Origin: Perkinsela sp. CCAP 1560/9 | Lineage: Eukaryota; Protista; Euglenozoa: Kinetoplastea | Length of the DNA: 64,000 nucleotides | Assembly (NCBI GenBank): GCA_965644495.1 | Contig: CBFFSA010000001.1 | Span: 310,001-374,000, forward strand | Reading direction: 5' to 3' | Position numbers and translations under genes: made by a program | Notes under the pieces: model-generated | Told to the model about the DNA's origin: nothing | The model's input: the letters and a program-made list of their open reading frames with translations, nothing else | Database searches by the model: none | Part shown: one piece after another, positions 35,347-51,818 of the stretch | Position numbering within the stretch: the stretch's first letter is position 1 | Layout of the letters: each line of letters opens with the position of its first letter

Positions 35347-35875
35347 TAATTCATTTTCTGTTTTAAGACGCTGCGATTTACAAGATGACTGTTTCAATGG
35401 CTTTGAGTAGGGGTCAATGGTAGCTCAAGAGAACCCCAAGTTTCCGGAGCGCAAGGTGCAAAGAAACCTGAAGTTACTATCCTAAGAAGAAACACCAAAC
35501 TTTCGCTGACAACAGAATTACATAATCTGACAACCGCTGCAAACGTTGAAGGCTTACTCGTGCTTCGACTCCGGTGTGGAACATTCCTTTTTGGACTTCT
35601 TCTACATTCATCTTGTGCATGCATCTAATTAACGTGAATACCTTGTATCTCGTAAGTCGAGTATGCCTATCAGAGCTCACTCGCAGAAATATATACGCCT
35701 AGTTAAATAATATGAAAAGTAGTACGATATATTTCGTCACAAAAGTTTCCTGTTTACTTCGCAGTTCAGATTCTAACAATATCGCAATACCGTAGTACTT
35801 TAATATTTTTGATCTACGTCATTTCATGATCATCGCACTCGGCACATAGCACTACGTCTACGAGCCACTCCCAAA

Positions 35876-37732
35876 ATGCATTTATGGACCCCACTCCTTC
35901 TCCACTTTCTCTTCACGGTCAGCCCACCACGTCTCCTTACGCAGCCCCTCTCCCTTCCCCACGTCCACACCCTGGACTGCAGTCTCCCCCTCTGTCACCC
36001 CCCAGCGGGGGTGTCCCGACTTTTCTGCACCCTGTTCCGTCCTCTCTTTCGCTACTTTGGTCTCCCATGGTGTCAACACCCTCGACCCCCGGTTCGTGAC
36101 TTCCGTCGACGCTCCCATAGTGCTGACGCCGTCCCTTCCCGAACAAAAGGACACGCGTCGCCCTTGTTTCCTCCTCAGCAAGCAGCATCCCATCCGGACG
36201 ACCATAACCCGTTCACTACTTCACGTCCTTTTCCCCCTGGCGCAATGCCCTCCTCTTCCACCCTCTCCGGCCCTCTCACGAAGGTGGGTCTCTCCCCTAC
36301 CCCTTTAATTGCCAGTCTCCCCGATCTTCGTTCGTCCCTCTCTCGCCCGCTTCACCGCCTCTCCTCCTCTCATCTTCGGAAACGAGGAGCGCGAAAAAAA
36401 AAAGACAGGCGTCGCTGGCGCTCGCGTTCCATGACCGCGCTGGACGTGGAGCAAATCGCGGAGGCGCAAATTCGCCACGCCTCCCGGGAGAGTGGGATTG
36501 AGGATTTTGTGGCCTCCGCGGGGTCGTTGGCACAAAAACAGAGGCAGGGGCCGCGGCGTCCGCTGCCGATTGCACTCGCCCCCGAGGACCGGCACACCCA
36601 AAGTCGGTTTCCTCGACGTGTCCAGGCGTTGAATTTGACAACGATGGAGTCCGATATTGGGGGCGCGGGATGGCTTGTGGGGCAGCAGTCGCTGTTGGAG
36701 CGTGTGCGAGTGGCACTCTCACAGCCGGAGCAGTACCGTATTGTGCGAAGACACGGGAGTCGACAAACGGAGTACGTGTTGTGGACCTCAGAACGACCGT
36801 TGGCACGTTTTTTGACGTGGACCCCTCACTGTGATTATATTGCCTACTCCCGACGGATGCTACGGCATCGAGAAGAGAACAAGGAGGGGGAGGAGGAGGA
36901 GGAGGAGCACGATGATTCTCTGTCCTCTCCAATGCTTTCTCCTCAATCTCAGCCTCCGCATGAGGTTGTGCAACAGCTCCAGCGGAAGATACGCAACCAG
37001 GTGGCTCGATACGTGTTGGACTATGAGGGTAGTCTCTCTGTCCCGATAACAGTTCCCGTTGTGATTGAGGAACTTGGAATTGGTACGCTACAGGAATACA
37101 TTCCAGGGGATGTTCTCCCCTCCGATATGGACAGCTATGAAGAGCTTGAAAAGAGATTTTTTGGGTCGTTTCCTCCGACACTGGCTTCACCTCAGCCGAA
37201 ACATCAGATGGAAGAGATCTTCAGTTGTGAGTCCGCACAGTTCTTGTTCGTTCTTGATGCCCTGACAGGCATCACGAACCGAGATCCTCGTACGCTGCAA
37301 CACATCTACAAGGCAGCGGGGTCCGAATCTTACCCTTTGGCTAACGGGATAGGATCACGGCACAGCGGTTCACATGAATTCGTTATCGGATTCATCTCTT
37401 CCGACTTCGGACTGTGTTTCGACGGTATTTCCAACTTTCACCCTCTATTTTCTACTGCGACGTTCTATTCATCGTTTCCCCACATGCATACTCCGTTTTT
37501 GCCAAGAGTCCGTCGATATCTACAAAGTGCCCTTCCCTCCGCCATAGATACGCTGCGCTCTCACTTAGTAAACACAAAGGATCCTATGATGGAGACCTAC
37601 ATGGAAGATCTTCAGCACGCTGCGAAATGTCTTAGGGAGGGCGCGGAAAAAGAAATGACGCCCATTGAAATTATGCGCAAATGCTTAGCTACCGGAGTCG
37701 TTTCATCAACACTGAGTTTTCTTGGGTGGTAG
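35876..37732 (+). CDS. Divergent PI4K-II-like protein (probable pseudokinase) with a low-complexity N-terminus
   Basis: 'GTLQEYIPG', 'VLDALTGITNRD', 'SDFGLCF' and 'FPHMHTPF' align with PI4K-II subdomains. The true start is uncertain. Confidence 0.6.
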   Translation: MHLWTPLLLHFLFTVSPPRLLTQPLSLPHVHTLDCSLPLCHPPAGVSRLFCTLFRPLFRYFGLPWCQHPRPPVRDFRRRSHSADAVPSRTKGHASPLFPPQQAASHPDDHNPFTTSRPFPPGAMPSSSTLSGPLTKVGLSPTPLIASLPDLRSSLSRPLHRLSSSHLRKRGARKKKDRRRWRSRSMTALDVEQIAEAQIRHASRESGIEDFVASAGSLAQKQRQGPRRPLPIALAPEDRHTQSRFPRRVQALNLTTMESDIGGAGWLVGQQSLLERVRVALSQPEQYRIVRRHGSRQTEYVLWTSERPLARFLTWTPHCDYIAYSRRMLRHREENKEGEEEEEEHDDSLSSPMLSPQSQPPHEVVQQLQRKIRNQVARYVLDYEGSLSVPITVPVVIEELGIGTLQEYIPGDVLPSDMDSYEELEKRFFGSFPPTLASPQPKHQMEEIFSCESAQFLFVLDALTGITNRDPRTLQHIYKAAGSESYPLANGIGSRHSGSHEFVIGFISSDFGLCFDGISNFHPLFSTATFYSSFPHMHTPFLPRVRRYLQSALPSAIDTLRSHLVNTKDPMMETYMEDLQHAAKCLREGAEKEMTPIEIMRKCLATGVVSSTLSFLGW

Positions 37733-38388
37733 TCCAGGCCAGTGGAAGCTCCTTTTAAAAGCTTCTAAATTCTACCTCGTAAACTAGAATTTTGCGTAAC
37801 TTGTTTTCATAGACTTGCTTTACTAGTTTTTAGATTCTACTAGAGTATTTTATAGTTTTTTCTGAATTTTGTCATCCTATTGCGGTAGAGTATTAAACGT
37901 GTAAAGTGCTACGATTCTCCAGAATTTAACCTTTCACACGCCACACCTCTCCATCTTGTGCATGGTTGGTTCTATCATATGGATACTGGTTTGATCAACC
38001 CTGTCGACCGCAATCGGCATTATTCCCATTAACTTATTCAATCTTATCCATTTCGTTTCGCTTTTTTCTCTTCTCAACACATTCAAACGCAACGTGTTAC
38101 GCCCTATCACATAAAAAACATCCGCTTTCCTCTACAACCTATACCCTTCACTTTTCTACAACACGTCCAGCCACATTTCCAACGTAACCTTAAAAAAGTT
38201 AGCATAAAAAACAAAAGAAAAGAATTTAATCCTAAAAAACAGGCTTCACAGAAACCTTAAAACCTTACAAATAAAAATACAATAATATATAATACAATAA
38301 AAAAGAAACGACTTTACACGAACCTTCCTTTTTTTCACAACAACAAAACACTTCCTCTCCCCTTACCTACCCTCTCTCCCCCACCCCC

Positions 38389-39315
38389 ATGACCACCGCC
38401 CCCTCCCCCTACCCCACCTGGATGAACTTCCCCGCGGGCACCCTTGCCGGGGCCACCGCCTGGGCCCTCATCCACCCCCTCGACATCATCAAAGTCCATG
38501 TCCAGATGCGCGCGGAGGCCAAGGCCGACACGGGCCTGGCCTCCGTCGTGCGGGCTATCCTCAAGGAGCGCGGGCCCGCGGGGCTCTACGACGGGCTAAG
38601 CGCGGGGGTCTCGCGGCAGCTGGTGTACGCGACCGTGCGCCTGGGGGGCTACGATGTGTTCCGAGACGCCATCGTGCGCCGTCGTGCCGCGGAGGGGGGG
38701 GTGCCGGTGGCCACGTTCGGGGATCGCCTGGTGGCGGGGGCGCTGAGTGGGGGGTTTGCGGCCTACCTGAGTTGTCCGGTGGAGGTGGCGATGGTGCGGA
38801 TGCAGGCGGATGGGTCGGGACCGGCGGGGGAACGGAGGGGGTATGCGCATGTGGGGGATGCGTTGCGTCGGATTGCGACGGAGGAGGGGGTGAGGACGTA
38901 TTGGCGGGGGTCGACCCCGACGGTGGTGCGGGCCACCGCGGTGGGGGTGACCCAAGTGGGGTTTTATGATCAGTGTAAATCGTGGCTGGTTCAGAGTGGG
39001 TATTTCGCGCCGACCTCCGTGTCCACGTTTGTAACATCCTCCCTGATTACGGGGGTGGTTTATTCTTTTCTTACGATGCCGATTGAGACGGTGAAAATTC
39101 GTATGCAGAATCAAAAGCCACAGGCGGACGGTTCGCTGCGTTATCGTAATATGGCACAGGCGTTAGGGAATGTTGCCCGTGTGGAGGGCGTTTCTTCCCT
39201 TTGGCGAGGCTATGTTCCGTATTACACTCGTTGTGGTTTACATACATTGAGCTGCTTTTTTGTTTTGGAGCAATGTAAAGCGTTTTTGACCTGGAGTTAT
39301 GCCCCGAAAATGTAG
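38389..39315 (+). CDS. Mitochondrial carrier, 2-oxoglutarate/malate or dicarboxylate-tricarboxylate type
   Basis: Three Px[DE]xx[KR]-like signatures; 'GLSAGVSRQLVYATVRLG', 'VRMQADG' and 'RRGY...ALRRIATEEG'. Confidence 0.92.
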   Translation: MTTAPSPYPTWMNFPAGTLAGATAWALIHPLDIIKVHVQMRAEAKADTGLASVVRAILKERGPAGLYDGLSAGVSRQLVYATVRLGGYDVFRDAIVRRRAAEGGVPVATFGDRLVAGALSGGFAAYLSCPVEVAMVRMQADGSGPAGERRGYAHVGDALRRIATEEGVRTYWRGSTPTVVRATAVGVTQVGFYDQCKSWLVQSGYFAPTSVSTFVTSSLITGVVYSFLTMPIETVKIRMQNQKPQADGSLRYRNMAQALGNVARVEGVSSLWRGYVPYYTRCGLHTLSCFFVLEQCKAFLTWSYAPKM

Positions 39316-48308: not shown

Positions 48309-48719
48309 GGCAAGCTCATGAGTATTTCACCATATTTTCCTCGTTGTTGTCATGTGAACATTCCAATTATGATACAGTATTCTAATGTTTGGACGGAAGG
48401 CAAAGCACTTAGCGCGAATCTTTGCCTTATACAGTATAGGCACCCCAAATACGTTGCTTGTGTTTTCTCAGCCCAATGAATCTTTTTTCTTTGACCATTG
48501 ATCGTTGAGTGCGATTTTAGCGTACAGTATGCAGTGTATTTCACAAATAAATCTGAACTTTACTATATCTAAACCTTACTTTTGTCATGGCTTGTTCTAA
48601 CACGTATCTCTATGTAGTTTACGTGTCTCTGTACAGCATATTGTATGTATCGCATTATAATAATTCCATAAGTTTTCATAAGTTTTAGCAAAACACTTTC
48701 ACTCCTATTTTTTCACAAG

Positions 48720-50573
48720 CTGTGTAGGGCAAAATTACTCAGCGGGATTGCAATTGCATCTACCCTACGTGAAAACGTCAAAAATCTTATCTCCACGCAC
48801 CGAGCCCAATGCCTCGCCTCTAAGATCTCCCTCCCTCCCCCGGGCCTCGCCGTGGTCCACGTTGGGGAACCACCCGATGCCCAGTGCTACCTCAGGGCCA
48901 CAAAAAAGTGCGCCGCTTACTGCGGCATCCGTGTCCGGTCGTACCCCCTCCCCGCGAATGCCTCCGCGGCCCAGCTCTATGCCCAGCTCTCCATACTCAA
49001 CCATGATCCCTCCACCCATGGTATCCTTCTCCTTTCTCCCCTTCCCCCTTCCCTGATTTCCCCTACCACCTTCTCCGCCATCTCCCCTGCCAAAGACGTG
49101 GACGGGGTACACTACGTAAACACAGGAAAGCTATGGTGTGACACCACACCGTTGTCTTTTTCCTCTTCTTATCCTTTTGTACATACTTCCGGTTTATTTG
49201 ATGCTGCTTCCTCCTCTTCTTTTTCCTCGATCACTTCTAATTGTACCACTGAACAGGAATTCTCCTTGGATTCCTCTTTTTCTAAAAATAAGCGGCGTTC
49301 CTTCGAAAAAGGATTCATCTCTGACGCCTCTACCTCTGAAAAAAGGTTCAACTCTGATTCACTTTCATCCAATCATAAATTACCGCCCTCTTGTCCCTCT
49401 GAAAACACCAACCTCTCCTCTAAAAAGGACATGTATGTGTCTTCCTCAAACCCCTCGTTATCCTCTAATGAACAACAAGCTAAAACCTCCTTTTTATCCC
49501 CTCCGAACACCTCGTTATCCACTGGAAATCAAAACGAACCAAAAGAAACCTCCTTTTCATCCCCTCTAAACCCCGCATTATCCCCTGAAACCCAAAACGA
49601 ACAACAAGCAGCAACCTCCCTTTCTTCCCCTACAGTCCCCTCGTTATCCACTGGAAACCAAAACGAACCAAAAGAAACCTCCTTTTCATCCCCTCTAAAC
49701 CCCGCCTTACCCTCCGAAACCCAAAACGAACAACAAGCCGCAACCTCCTTTCCATCCCCTCCAAACCCCACATTACCCTCCGAAACCCAAAACAAACAAC
49801 AAGCCGCAACCTCCTTTCCATCCCCTCCAAACCCCGCATTACCCTCCGAAACCCAAAACAAACAACAAGCCGCAACCTCCTTTCCATCCCCTCCAAACCC
49901 CACATTACCCTCCGAAACCCAAAAACAACAACAACAACAACACGAAATCTCCTTTTCTTCCTCCTCATCTTCCCCATCTTCCTCCTTTTCTTCCCCATCT
50001 TCCCCATCTCCCCCATCTCCCTCACCTTCATCTCCCTCCCCATCACCCCCCCTCCCCCCCCTCCTCCCCTGCACCCCCCTCGCGATCCTCACCCTCCTCA
50101 CCGCCCACCACATCCTCCCCCCCTCCCCCCCCTCCCCCCACGTCGTCGTCCTCAGCACCTCCCCCGTCGTCGGCCTCCCCCTCGCACGCCTCCTGCTCCG
50201 CGCCGCCCTCCCCGCGGTCTCCCTCGTGGACCCCACGAGTGCGGGCGCCATGGGGTGGGCGTCCCGCGGGGACGTGCTGGTGTGCGCGGCGGGGGTACCG
50301 CAAGGGGTGGGGAGGGGGTGGGTGAAGAGGGGCGCGGTGGTGGTGGATGTGGGGGGAGGCAGGGGGAGGGGGGAGGGGGAGGGGGGGACGGGGGGGAGGA
50401 TCAAGGGAGGAGGAGGGGAGGTGGTGATGGAGGAGGTGGTGGAGGTGGCGTCGTGGGTGAGTCCGGTTCCGGGTGGGGTGGGTCCGGTGACGGTGGGGGT
50501 GTTGATGGGGAATGTGTGGAGGGCGTATTGTGCGCAGTGTGGGGTGGGGAGGGGACACAGGGGGGTGGAGTAG
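48720..50573 (+). CDS. folD: FolD-like methylene-THF dehydrogenase/cyclohydrolase homologue with an insertion of about 300 aa
   Basis: 'AKLLSGIAIA', PGLAVVHVG, HGILL.SPLP, KDVDG, PCTP, DVLVCAAG, VKRGAVVVDVG and SPVPGGVGPVT. There is no clean ATG (see findings). Confidence 0.85.
   Translation: MCRAKLLSGIAIASTLRENVKNLISTHRAQCLASKISLPPPGLAVVHVGEPPDAQCYLRATKKCAAYCGIRVRSYPLPANASAAQLYAQLSILNHDPSTHGILLLSPLPPSLISPTTFSAISPAKDVDGVHYVNTGKLWCDTTPLSFSSSYPFVHTSGLFDAASSSSFSSITSNCTTEQEFSLDSSFSKNKRRSFEKGFISDASTSEKRFNSDSLSSNHKLPPSCPSENTNLSSKKDMYVSSSNPSLSSNEQQAKTSFLSPPNTSLSTGNQNEPKETSFSSPLNPALSPETQNEQQAATSLSSPTVPSLSTGNQNEPKETSFSSPLNPALPSETQNEQQAATSFPSPPNPTLPSETQNKQQAATSFPSPPNPALPSETQNKQQAATSFPSPPNPTLPSETQKQQQQQHEISFSSSSSSPSSSFSSPSSPSPPSPSPSSPSPSPPLPPLLPCTPLAILTLLTAHHILPPSPPSPHVVVLSTSPVVGLPLARLLLRAALPAVSLVDPTSAGAMGWASRGDVLVCAAGVPQGVGRGWVKRGAVVVDVGGGRGRGEGEGGTGGRIKGGGGEVVMEEVVEVASWVSPVPGGVGPVTVGVLMGNVWRAYCAQCGVGRGHRGVE
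49480..49945 (+). repeat. Coding minisatellite of about 7 units of 63-66 bp (21-22 aa, TSFPSPPNPALPSETQNKQQAA)
   Basis: Tandem units are directly visible inside the FolD insertion. Confidence 0.9.
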
Positions 50574-51818
50574 TCGTGTACCGTGCGGAACATGAATGCG
50601 GGATCCGTTAATTACGGGACATCTCCTTTTGGGGTTAACAGTGTCCAGTGTTTTATGGAGTGATTCAGACAGAAAAAGCACACTCTTCACGAAAGATGAT
50701 GGGGTGAGACAGTATAAGGTCCTTATACCTGCGTTCACCGCAGGCCCGAAAAAGGGATTCTCATGTACTGCCGTGCGTATTATTCCCCACATTTTGCTCG
50801 ACAACTTTTTTCTCTTTAATGTTAAAGATTTTCGGACAAGGAAAAACGGTTAGCAGGGCCTCAGAAGAGTCATTAGGTCGCAGTTTTTCATACTGTCGGA
50901 TAAAATTAAGACATGTTCGTTCGTGCGGCAAGACAAGGAAGAGCTTTTTCTATGAAATCTATGATAGACGGTGTTTTGATGATTCCTCCTTATACTTGTG
51001 ATGTACCTTGCAATGTTCATTTTTATGAGCGTAGTACATGTGAGGAGCTGCGGGTGAAACCTCGCGAAACCTCAGTGAAACCTCGTGAAACTTCGGTGAA
51101 ACCTTGTTGAAACCTCGGTGAAACCTCGTGAAACCTCGGTGAAACCTCGCGAAACTCAGCTAAAATCCCTCAAAGCCATTCTCAAGTGTTTGTCGTCCAA
51201 CAACTCAGCAAACAGAATAGAAATACAGCAATACTCAGTGCTGGATAAATTCATTTTAACGTCTTTCAAAAATCGTTTCAACAACGCCACAACCACGACT
51301 ACACAGGCTTTGGTTCTCTTCATTGAAATTTTTAAGAGATCTACATTAATGTATGTGGCATATTCATACTGATGATTCACGCACAATGATCCATACATGA
51401 AAACCAACGCAATCTGCACCGCATCTTTTATTTTTCAAAAGGGTCAGAAGACGTGAAAAAAGAGTCAGCTAGCCACTTTTCCGGGAGTGGCCAGCTGGCC
51501 ACTTTTCCAGGGGATGGCCCGATGGCCATTTTTTCAGAAGCCTTCAGAAGCCACTTTTTAGAAGAAGATTGGCATTGTTTTGTCAACCGTAGCCGCCATG
51601 AGGTCCACGAATTTTCTGATTGATACGACGAAAGTGTTTTTGTATAATCCAGGCATAAAGGGGCGAGGGAGATACCAAGCAACAGATGTAGCAGATTCCC
51701 ACTGAAAAGAAATCGTATTTCCCTGCACGAAGTTGACTCCGAGCTAGCAAGTGCATAGGTAGACATTTCTCGTGCAGGAGATACGACTTCTTTTCAGTGG
51801 GAATCTGCTACATCTGTT

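Follow-up and report, generated by a model that had tools for sequence, protein, structure and literature searches.

A strand-polar C-to-G flip in a kinetoplastid FolD gene at the centre of a recurrent type of intragenic GC island

We analysed a stretch of 64,000 nucleotides (nt) from an assembly deposited as Perkinsela sp. CCAP 1560/9 (GCA_965644495.1, contig CBFFSA010000001.1, positions 310,001 to 374,000, forward strand; hereafter the window), in which a gene for a FolD homologue switches from C-rich to G-rich DNA around position 50236. This flip is the centre of one of the recurrent intragenic GC islands of this genome, FolD being the strongest local case. In about one sixth of the genes the coding DNA is GC-rich, and each strand is then first C(/A)-rich and subsequently G(/T)-rich, in an order that is invariant. 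The most likely cause, to which we give a probability of roughly 40%, is a directional bias in DNA substitution (fixation) that is polar about a point inside the gene and comes on top of a preference for G or C at third codon positions (GC3). A genome-wide pressure of fixed polarity acting on codons and amino acids is apparently new to the literature, as a codon polarity of the C-then-G kind was not seen to be described for kinetoplastids in a limited literature search.

The compositional flip and the gene that carries it

According to an earlier note on the window, which had placed the flip at about 50237, the 60 nt at 50041-50100 contain 41 C but 3 G, and those at 50341-50400 contain 45 G but 2 C. 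Our recount gave identical numbers (A6 C41 G3 T10 and A9 C2 G45 T4, respectively), and the cumulative difference G-C over 48600-50700 reaches its minimum at 50236. Summed in 100-nt intervals, C and G amount to 353 and 56 at 49551-50250 as compared to 38 and 209 at 50251-50600. With -63 and +67 (standard deviation 10.5), the lowest and the highest G-C value anywhere in the window fall at the FolD flip, which bears out its description as the strongest example in the window. Values of -50 or below are found in 8 and values of +50 or above in 21 of 5278 scanning windows across 264 kb, that is the window and the next 200 kb, which also underlie the genome-wide figures given below. The change is, however, less abrupt than the ~20 nt claimed before: consecutive 30-nt steps over 50191-50280 contain C and G in ratios of 17/7, 13/10 and 7/17, indicating a transition of about 60-90 nt.

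The flip is a genuine biological feature of an expressed gene. Logan contigs of three sequencing runs span position 50236, covering 49952-50900 (run X1, 0 differences), 49994-50477 (X2, 0 differences) and 49980-50290 (X3). The three runs belong to a single study and the contigs are assembled sequences rather than raw reads; support for the homopolymer lengths at the flip is good, though not independent. The misassembly or chimera that the earlier note had considered, or a homopolymer sequencing error, is hardly credible as the source of the flip: homopolymer content is extreme there and some runs are thinly covered over 50332-50500, but a single reading frame with continuous FolD homology passes through it and contigs of all three runs bridge it. 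An inverted duplication was likewise rejected as the source of the two arms, which are 70-83% complementary with low-complexity matches only and encode successive parts of one domain.

The open frame in question extends from 48672 to a TAG stop at 50571-50573 and carries both FolD domains, the flip centre being codon 506 of 617. The catalytic domain (PF00763) is recognized with E 3.3e-18 (66.4 bits, cut-off 32.8) and the NAD(P)-binding domain (PF02882) with E 1.8e-29 (102.6 bits, cut-off 27). The latter match covers residues 404-561 as one stretch across the flip, in keeping with the previous remark that the protein stays alignable to FolD, and is the sole one in the 21-Mb genome. Judged by these domains, the gene is a homologue of FolD/DHCH (methylene-tetrahydrofolate dehydrogenase/cyclohydrolase). 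The open frame by itself is weak evidence, since G-poor and C-poor DNA has few stops in any frame; frames overlapping FolD are open on both strands as well. The locus comprises the following features:

48687..48688, + strand: AG trans-splice acceptor, with the mRNA body starting at 48689 (X3 contig with spliced leader)
48720..48722, + strand: CTG at the usual position of the FolD methionine (translation; the alignment to solved FolDs begins 3 residues later)
48720..49136, + strand: catalytic domain, C-leaning, with a third-position C fraction (C3) of 0.40-0.55 and a G fraction (G3) of ~0.15 (PF00763; alignment to 4a5o and 5nhs)
49137..50060, + strand: low-complexity in-frame insert of ~308 codons between the two domains, G-poor and C/A-rich
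50034..50206, - strand: clusters of G-quadruplex (G4)-type motifs, defined as at least four runs of three or more G (motif scan)
50061..50237, + strand: C-rich half of the NAD(P)-binding domain, position 3 being 90% C over 59 codons; holds the altered GRS and CHS motifs
50191..50280, no strand: transition zone with the cumulative G-C minimum at 50236 (30-nt step counts)
50238..50570, + strand: G-rich half of the NAD(P)-binding domain, position 3 being 76% G over 111 codons; holds the conserved PVPGGVGP
50304..50381, with another at 50541, + strand: G4-type motif clusters (motif scan)
50571..50573, + strand: TAG stop, where G-richness ends (GC 0.65 before, then 0.50 and 0.40)

The X3 contig aligns from 48688 onwards, preceded by 23 unaligned letters ending in CAGTTTCTGTACCTTGTT. 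The same leader sequence occurs at another locus (L007), where it is followed by a GT donor, marking a spliced leader (SL) RNA gene. As the spliced leader is joined at 48688 on this contig, the FolD gene is expressed, namely as a trans-spliced mRNA. The same-strand frames, the spliced-leader junction, the SL RNA genes and the carrier similarity given below identify the organism as a kinetoplastid related to Perkinsela, with polycistronic, intron-poor genes; all frames of at least 250 codons in the window that do not overlap a longer one are on the + strand. The 5' end of the FolD mRNA lies 31 nt upstream of the CTG at 48720, which has A at -3. No in-frame ATG, GTG or TTG is present in 48675-48851; the earliest ATG of the mRNA, at 48809, belongs to another frame and begins an upstream open reading frame of 4 codons, and the earliest in-frame ATG (49431) is located within the insert. 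Thus, going by the sequence, FolD would either be translated from a non-AUG codon, for which the CUG at 48720 is the candidate, or be an expressed pseudogene.

Similar to FolD/DHCH of Leishmania major (4A26) and human (1A4I), the window gene has both Pfam domains and keeps the motifs DVDG, including its Asp, and PVPGGVGP. Unlike these proteins, it lacks an ATG, contains the ~308-codon insert and deviates at catalytic and cofactor-binding positions. That is, alignment to 4a5o and 5nhs reveals Thr in place of the catalytic Lys of the YxxxK motif (Y-L-R-A-T-K-K vs Y-V-A-H-K-R-K) and Leu in place of the Gln of VQLP (I-L-L-L-S-P-L-P vs I-L-V-Q-L-P-L-P). The NADP-binding motifs are altered too, with STS at GRS and VDP at CHS (match to human MTHFD1, 9ise). 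The replaced catalytic residues correspond to Lys56 and Gln100 in human numbering. The insert contains a Ser/Pro tract at 49947-50060 and, at 49470-49941, an in-frame 66-nt (22-amino-acid) minisatellite with 7.3 copies, 83% match and an additional period of 129; short-read contigs end inside this minisatellite, so its copy number may be variable or uncertain.

All three codon positions follow the flip. The silent position 3 changes most, from 90% C in the 59 codons before to 76% G in the 111 codons after it, but position 1 also shifts from 53% C to 65% G and position 2 from 44% C to 44% G. Pro is encoded by CCC (11 times) before the flip and by CCG (4 times) after it, Val by GTC (6 times) and then GTG (21 times), and Leu by CTC (14 times) and then CTG or TTG, while Ala moves from GCC to GCG and Arg from CGC to AGG. 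Residue usage changes as well: the C half contains L15, P11, V7, A6, T5, S5 and H3, the G half G31, V23, A9, R9, E7 and W4, in agreement with the shift from P/L/S/H/T to G/V/E/R/W that had been described for this domain.

The FolD orthologue of Perkinsela, a normal protein of 288 residues, shows neither the skew nor the amino-acid bias (GC3 0.40). The two genes are syntenic; Perkinsela FolD is followed by one small gene and then kinesin, and the window FolD also precedes kinesin. In aligned columns, (G-C) at positions 1+2 goes from -0.40 to +0.73 in the window gene as compared to -0.03 to +0.30 in Perkinsela. Synonymous and replacement changes thus both track the skew, and the orthologue does not share the amino-acid bias without it, which had been proposed as the observation that would speak against the earlier note's interpretation. 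Where the window gene carries its insert, Perkinsela FolD has GKLW and then only ~10 residues until PCT, and the Gly/Arg/Glu-rich loop of the G-rich half is 11 residues longer than its Perkinsela counterpart. The rewritten NAD(P)-binding domain (50061-50570) is 35% identical to the syntenic orthologue but 45-47% identical to GC-rich-looking FolDs of bacterial or coccidian-like appearance, rich in Gly, Ala, Arg and Val; this closeness is, as far as the sequences tell, driven by composition. Word searches with the NAD(P)-binding domain returned distant FolDs only, at no more than 47% identity, and those with the catalytic domain FolDs at no more than 49% identity in partial alignments, with no named kinetoplastid in either case. 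Faster evolution of FolD than of its neighbours was considered and dropped, as FolD is 35-37% and the neighbouring kinesin motor 39% identical to Perkinsela.

Recurrent intragenic islands of fixed polarity

The FolD flip has counterparts elsewhere in the scanned DNA. At a strict threshold, 6-7 C-to-G flips and not a single G-to-C flip were detected, and every strong flip lies inside an open frame. A lax threshold yielded 11 C-to-G and 5 G-to-C flips; three of the latter five fall in a region with strong skew segments spaced by ~5.1 kb and one in a spacer between GC-rich genes. On the minus strand, the message of island genes is likewise C-rich and then G-rich, as symmetry demands. GC3 exceeds 0.55 in 17 of 99 genes, and it locally reaches 98% in a genome of 44% GC. 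When these 17 genes are divided into fifths, G/(G+C) at fourfold degenerate sites rises from 0.23 through 0.38 and 0.53 to 0.63 and 0.62, while it is flat at 0.50 in the other 82 genes. The polarity agrees in 15 of 16 GC3-rich genes and holds within each fourfold family and for each following base. Two further islands are located in the window:

38301..38950, + strand: second island, in a mitochondrial carrier gene (C3 0.60 to 0.13, G3 0.34 to 0.61)
35851..36375, + strand: C arm of a weaker island in a 639-codon gene (third-position skew -0.40, then +0.43)

The carrier protein (38389-39312) shares 64-65% identity with its counterparts in Perkinsela and free-living Prokinetoplastina. Housekeeping functions are well represented among the island genes (eIF4E, proteasome alpha, S6e, L18Ae, cyclophilin and the carrier), which further include alpha-SNAP, a nucleoplasmin-like protein, LCAT, PEX11, PS decarboxylase, an RNA cyclase-like protein, a zinc-finger protein and unnamed ones. 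GC3 is only moderate for eIF5A (0.51), L5/L11 (0.48) and eIF2-alpha (0.47), and the FolD, RanBP zinc-finger and LCAT genes exceed ribosomal protein genes in extremity. The zinc-finger gene encodes a RanBP2-type protein on the minus strand (L027:982-1938; C1:544982-545938), in which finger 1 is written in C-rich codons (W-L-C-P-S-C...) and fingers 2 and 3 in G-rich codons (W-R-C-G-R-C...). The fingers serve as an internal control, which indicates that local base bias sets the choice of amino acids.

The pressure is not simply one from AT to GC, since in twofold codons the complementary base is removed even at the cost of GC. Among codons for K, E and Q, the G-ending share is 27% in C arms and 83% in G arms (background 39%); among codons for F, Y, H, N, D and C, the C-ending share is 76% in C arms and 29% in G arms (background 40%). 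Runs of C7-C8 and G7 are present in frame.

Island edges were determined from profiles aligned at ATG and stop codons, as the maxima of cumulative skew are shifted by weak drift in the flanks and hence unreliable. The GC content of GC3-rich genes steps up at the first ATG, from 35-43% to 52-62%, and past the stop it falls from 55% over 41% to 33% within 60 nt; ordinary genes exhibit about 10 points of the same step at their edges. The skew, in contrast to total GC, which is hardly raised there, leaks into the non-coding flanks. C and G amount to 0.27 and 0.10 in the 150 nt upstream of island genes (0.18 and 0.17 for other genes), G and C to 0.22 and 0.16 in the 100 nt downstream, and C still exceeds G (0.23 vs 0.16) at 151-300 nt upstream of the ATG, a stretch that the mRNA probably does not include. 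In shape the islands are domes with a width of about 1 kb, GC being highest near the flip, and in long genes they cover a part only.

A milder form of the same polarity is present in relatives. A kinetoplastid relative with 60% GC (L030; ENA ERZ25071330, 629,933-bp contig; GC3 0.64-0.94), in which the carrier-CUE gene order is as in the window, has it in 9 of 9 genes, G/(G+C) increasing from 0.34 to 0.52, and Perkinsela has it in 7 of 10 genes. The flip of the carrier gene itself is absent in both.

Possible causes of the polarity

In the mechanism that we favour, the strand running 5' to 3' outward from an intragenic point would gain G and lose C. This polar bias would be superimposed on the kinetoplastid preference for GC-ending codons, and selection on AT-rich splicing and polyadenylation signals would exclude it from the regions between genes. 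FolD would be the strongest case since the enzyme seems weakly constrained, which is suggested by its missing ATG, the replaced catalytic Lys and Gln, the changed cofactor motifs and the ~308-codon insert. We infer that mutation or repair, and not selection, generates the pressure. A bias at the DNA level ranks first because conserved residues and the start codon of FolD were overwritten, because the islands peak at the flip and cover long genes in part, and because the skew reaches the non-coding flanks. It is ranked above selection on the message, since the genes that are most extreme are not those expected to be most abundant, the zinc fingers of one protein are spelled according to the arm in which they lie, and homopolymer runs are present in frame which coding selection should avoid.

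Several observations weigh against this explanation. Enrichment of GC is confined to coding sequence, a limit that a gene-blind process should ignore, and a gene of low GC3 is situated just 83 nt from the zinc-finger island. The C arm has its full strength from the coding start in the carrier, LCAT and zinc-finger genes, and the two arms of FolD, with lengths of about 1450 and 340 nt, are unequal. In the 60%-GC relative, the polarity resets in every spacer and is apparently tied to the gene unit, and the carrier ranks first in GC3 within its neighbourhood there and second in Perkinsela. Moreover, many island genes are abundant housekeeping genes, no trigger for an intragenic centre is known, and the genome-wide figures cover 1.3% of the genome.

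As to the nature of such a bias, a tentative and on balance doubtful idea is that a two-way DNA transaction takes place at fixed points in these coding sequences and leaves a strand-specific mutational footprint. Candidates could be bidirectional initiation by RNA polymerase II (Pol II) of the G/T-rich type, a hotspot of repair or breakage, or an unusual origin. The footprint would be strong enough for silent sites to become saturated and enzyme domains rewritten, and for a start codon and catalytic residues to be lost. Pol II start regions of Trypanosoma brucei have a G/T-rich coding strand and drive directional transcription (Wedel et al. 2017, PMC5579346). The islands resemble divergent starts of this type in that the outward strand is enriched in G and T, the top strand being C/A-rich and then G/T-rich. 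However, the T. brucei regions are non-coding, marked by H2A.Z and located at boundaries of polycistronic units, whereas the islands measure ~1 kb, reside within coding sequence in same-strand arrays and affect ~1/6 of the genes. Indeed, the FolD flip lies inside a run of same-strand genes and not at a polycistronic boundary.

Selection at the mRNA level is a serious rival to the DNA-level bias, possible though not probable. In this scenario GC-ending codons raise mRNA and protein levels, and C-ending codons (5') are kept apart from G-ending codons (3') to avoid local folding or masking of pyrimidine tracts, weakly constrained residues following suit. In trypanosomatids, GC3 codon bias determines mRNA and protein levels (Jeacock et al. 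2018, PMC5896881; PMC5896880), and in T. brucei GC3 codons increase the abundance of both (PMC5896881). The islands share with this system the rise of GC-ending codons in a subset of genes and its limitation to coding sequence, and housekeeping genes are numerous among them. Such a preference can explain the coding-confined GC enrichment, but not the polarity: no C-then-G order is reported for it, the extremes of the islands are not the genes expected to be most abundant, and amino acids shift as well. Selection on the message would nevertheless account for several features that are awkward otherwise. The polarity is restricted to GC3-rich genes here, yet present in every gene of the GC3-rich relative, where it starts anew with each gene, and the complementary base is avoided in twofold codons of both arms (27% vs 39% and 29% vs 40%), which a drive from AT to GC does not predict. 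Local folding in 60-nt segments is weak, with -8.3 kcal/mol as compared to -23.0 kcal/mol when the same bases are mixed. On the other hand, long-range pairing between the arms is strengthened rather than weakened by the arrangement, and FolD is the most extreme case despite lacking an ATG and catalytic residues, while eIF5A and L5/L11 have only moderate GC3. The partial coverage of long genes with a peak at the flip, the frameshift-prone C7-C8 and G7 runs and the persistence of the C excess 151-300 nt upstream of the ATG, probably outside the mRNA, also argue against it, and there is no established reason for C to come first. Gradients in the choice between C- and G-ending codons along genes do have precedents. 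Grasses exhibit a positional C3/G3 (CG3) skew of about 0.05-0.1 (PMC2895627), and a G3 gradient along genes of E. coli is among the findings which that paper cites. In contrast to the grass gradients, the skew of the islands runs from -0.9 to +0.9 inside one domain.

A fixed bidirectional replication origin, with the skew as accumulated mutational asymmetry between leading and lagging strands, appears unlikely. It would fit the point-symmetric pattern with G(/T) on each outward-running strand, the invariant polarity and the highest GC near the centre. Bacterial origins and human skew jumps display the same sign, with G(/T) on the outward strands. However, T. brucei origins mapped by stranded nascent-strand sequencing are intergenic in 85-92% of cases, have poly(dA)/poly(dT) flanks and carry plus-strand G4s upstream of the centre and minus-strand G4s downstream of it (PMC13179062). 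The islands are similar in having strand-specific G4 motifs that are symmetric about a centre, but with the opposite polarity, in FolD on the minus strand to the left (50034-50206) and on the plus strand to the right (50304-50381), and A+T accounts for 7 of 30 bases at the flip centre (50221-50250). Furthermore, coding DNA harbours the centres, the enrichment in GC halts at start and stop codons, the FolD arms are unequal, and the polarity of 9 out of 9 adjacent genes in the relative would demand one origin per gene.

GC-biased gene conversion at an intragenic recombination hotspot is quite improbable. Its model is the mouse Fxy gene, where biased conversion drives a GC3 jump at the pseudoautosomal boundary. 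Such a process would be in line with local GC3 values that peak at 98% in a genome of 44% GC, with dome-shaped islands of about 1 kb and with changes of amino acids that oppose conservation. In Fxy and in the GC-skewed CpG-island promoters of mammals, which are enriched in G on the non-template strand, base composition likewise changes sharply within a short stretch and prevails over codon usage, and for Fxy over amino-acid identity as well. But CpG islands are promoters and not coding bodies, and Fxy is enriched in GC without a strand flip. Conversion from AT to GC gives no strand skew; it does not predict sub-background levels of G-ending K/E/Q codons in C arms (0.27 vs 0.39) or of C-ending twofold codons in G arms (0.29 vs 0.40), and the flanks swap G for C without gaining GC.

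A regulatory structure specific to FolD, be it a long C-tract/G-tract hairpin in RNA or DNA or a pair of diverging G-quadruplexes, is very improbable. Both structural potentials noticed earlier do exist. G4 motifs diverge from the flip, those on its left being in the bottom strand and those on its right in the top strand, and the predicted fold of the 651 nt of 49950-50600 has -403 kcal/mol, 207 of its 245 pairs being formed between the C-tract arm and the G-tract arm. Shuffling within each arm, however, still yields -377 +/- 10.5 kcal/mol (native z = -2.5), and the stability of the pairing would mostly be a product of composition. A special structural element of FolD is thereby not upheld: composition provides most of the energy and the same polarity recurs in ~1/6 of the genes, including unrelated ones with the same layout, so that the explanation has to be genome-wide. 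A hairpin would also be indifferent to the order of its arms, yet C-to-G alone occurs. Rfam gave no match anywhere in the window.

Neighbouring observations and implications

Some further observations concern the surroundings of the FolD gene. About 480 nt past its stop, a tandem repeat with an 11/21-nt unit GTGAAACCTC occupies 51053-51155. Beyond the window, at C1:380000-418000 (L010-L014), the + array of the window meets a - array in a convergent strand-switch region, which contains frames on mixed strands, repeated 174-codon frames and G-rich segments ~5.1 kb apart (C1:395226, 400376 and 405601). A 152-codon frame on the minus strand (L018:2963-3418) has a weak match to an integrase core (rve; 28 bits, below the cut-off of 32.6) and may be the remnant of a mobile element.

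The 19-nt 3' end of the spliced-leader exon has ~567 copies in the genome, on both strands and on many contigs. One copy, at L007:1501-1519 (C1:393095-393113), has a GT donor and a stem resembling that of an intron directly behind it and represents an SL RNA gene; others are found in L006, L008 and L009. SL RNA genes of trypanosomatids usually form tandem arrays; in this genome, SL RNA genes, or retroposed copies of them, are dispersed.

Irrespective of the cause, convergence driven by composition, as in the rewritten FolD domain, can mislead the annotation of homology and the inference of gene transfer. If the pressure acts on the message, it amounts to a rule for synonymous codons along the mRNA, C-ending first and G-ending later, which would be relevant to the design of expression constructs for kinetoplastids, where codon content sets mRNA levels. 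If it acts at the DNA level, strand-specific mutation or repair at fixed points would override selection on the protein, and FolD would be an especially clear case of this, given its solved structures and a syntenic orthologue that is unaffected.

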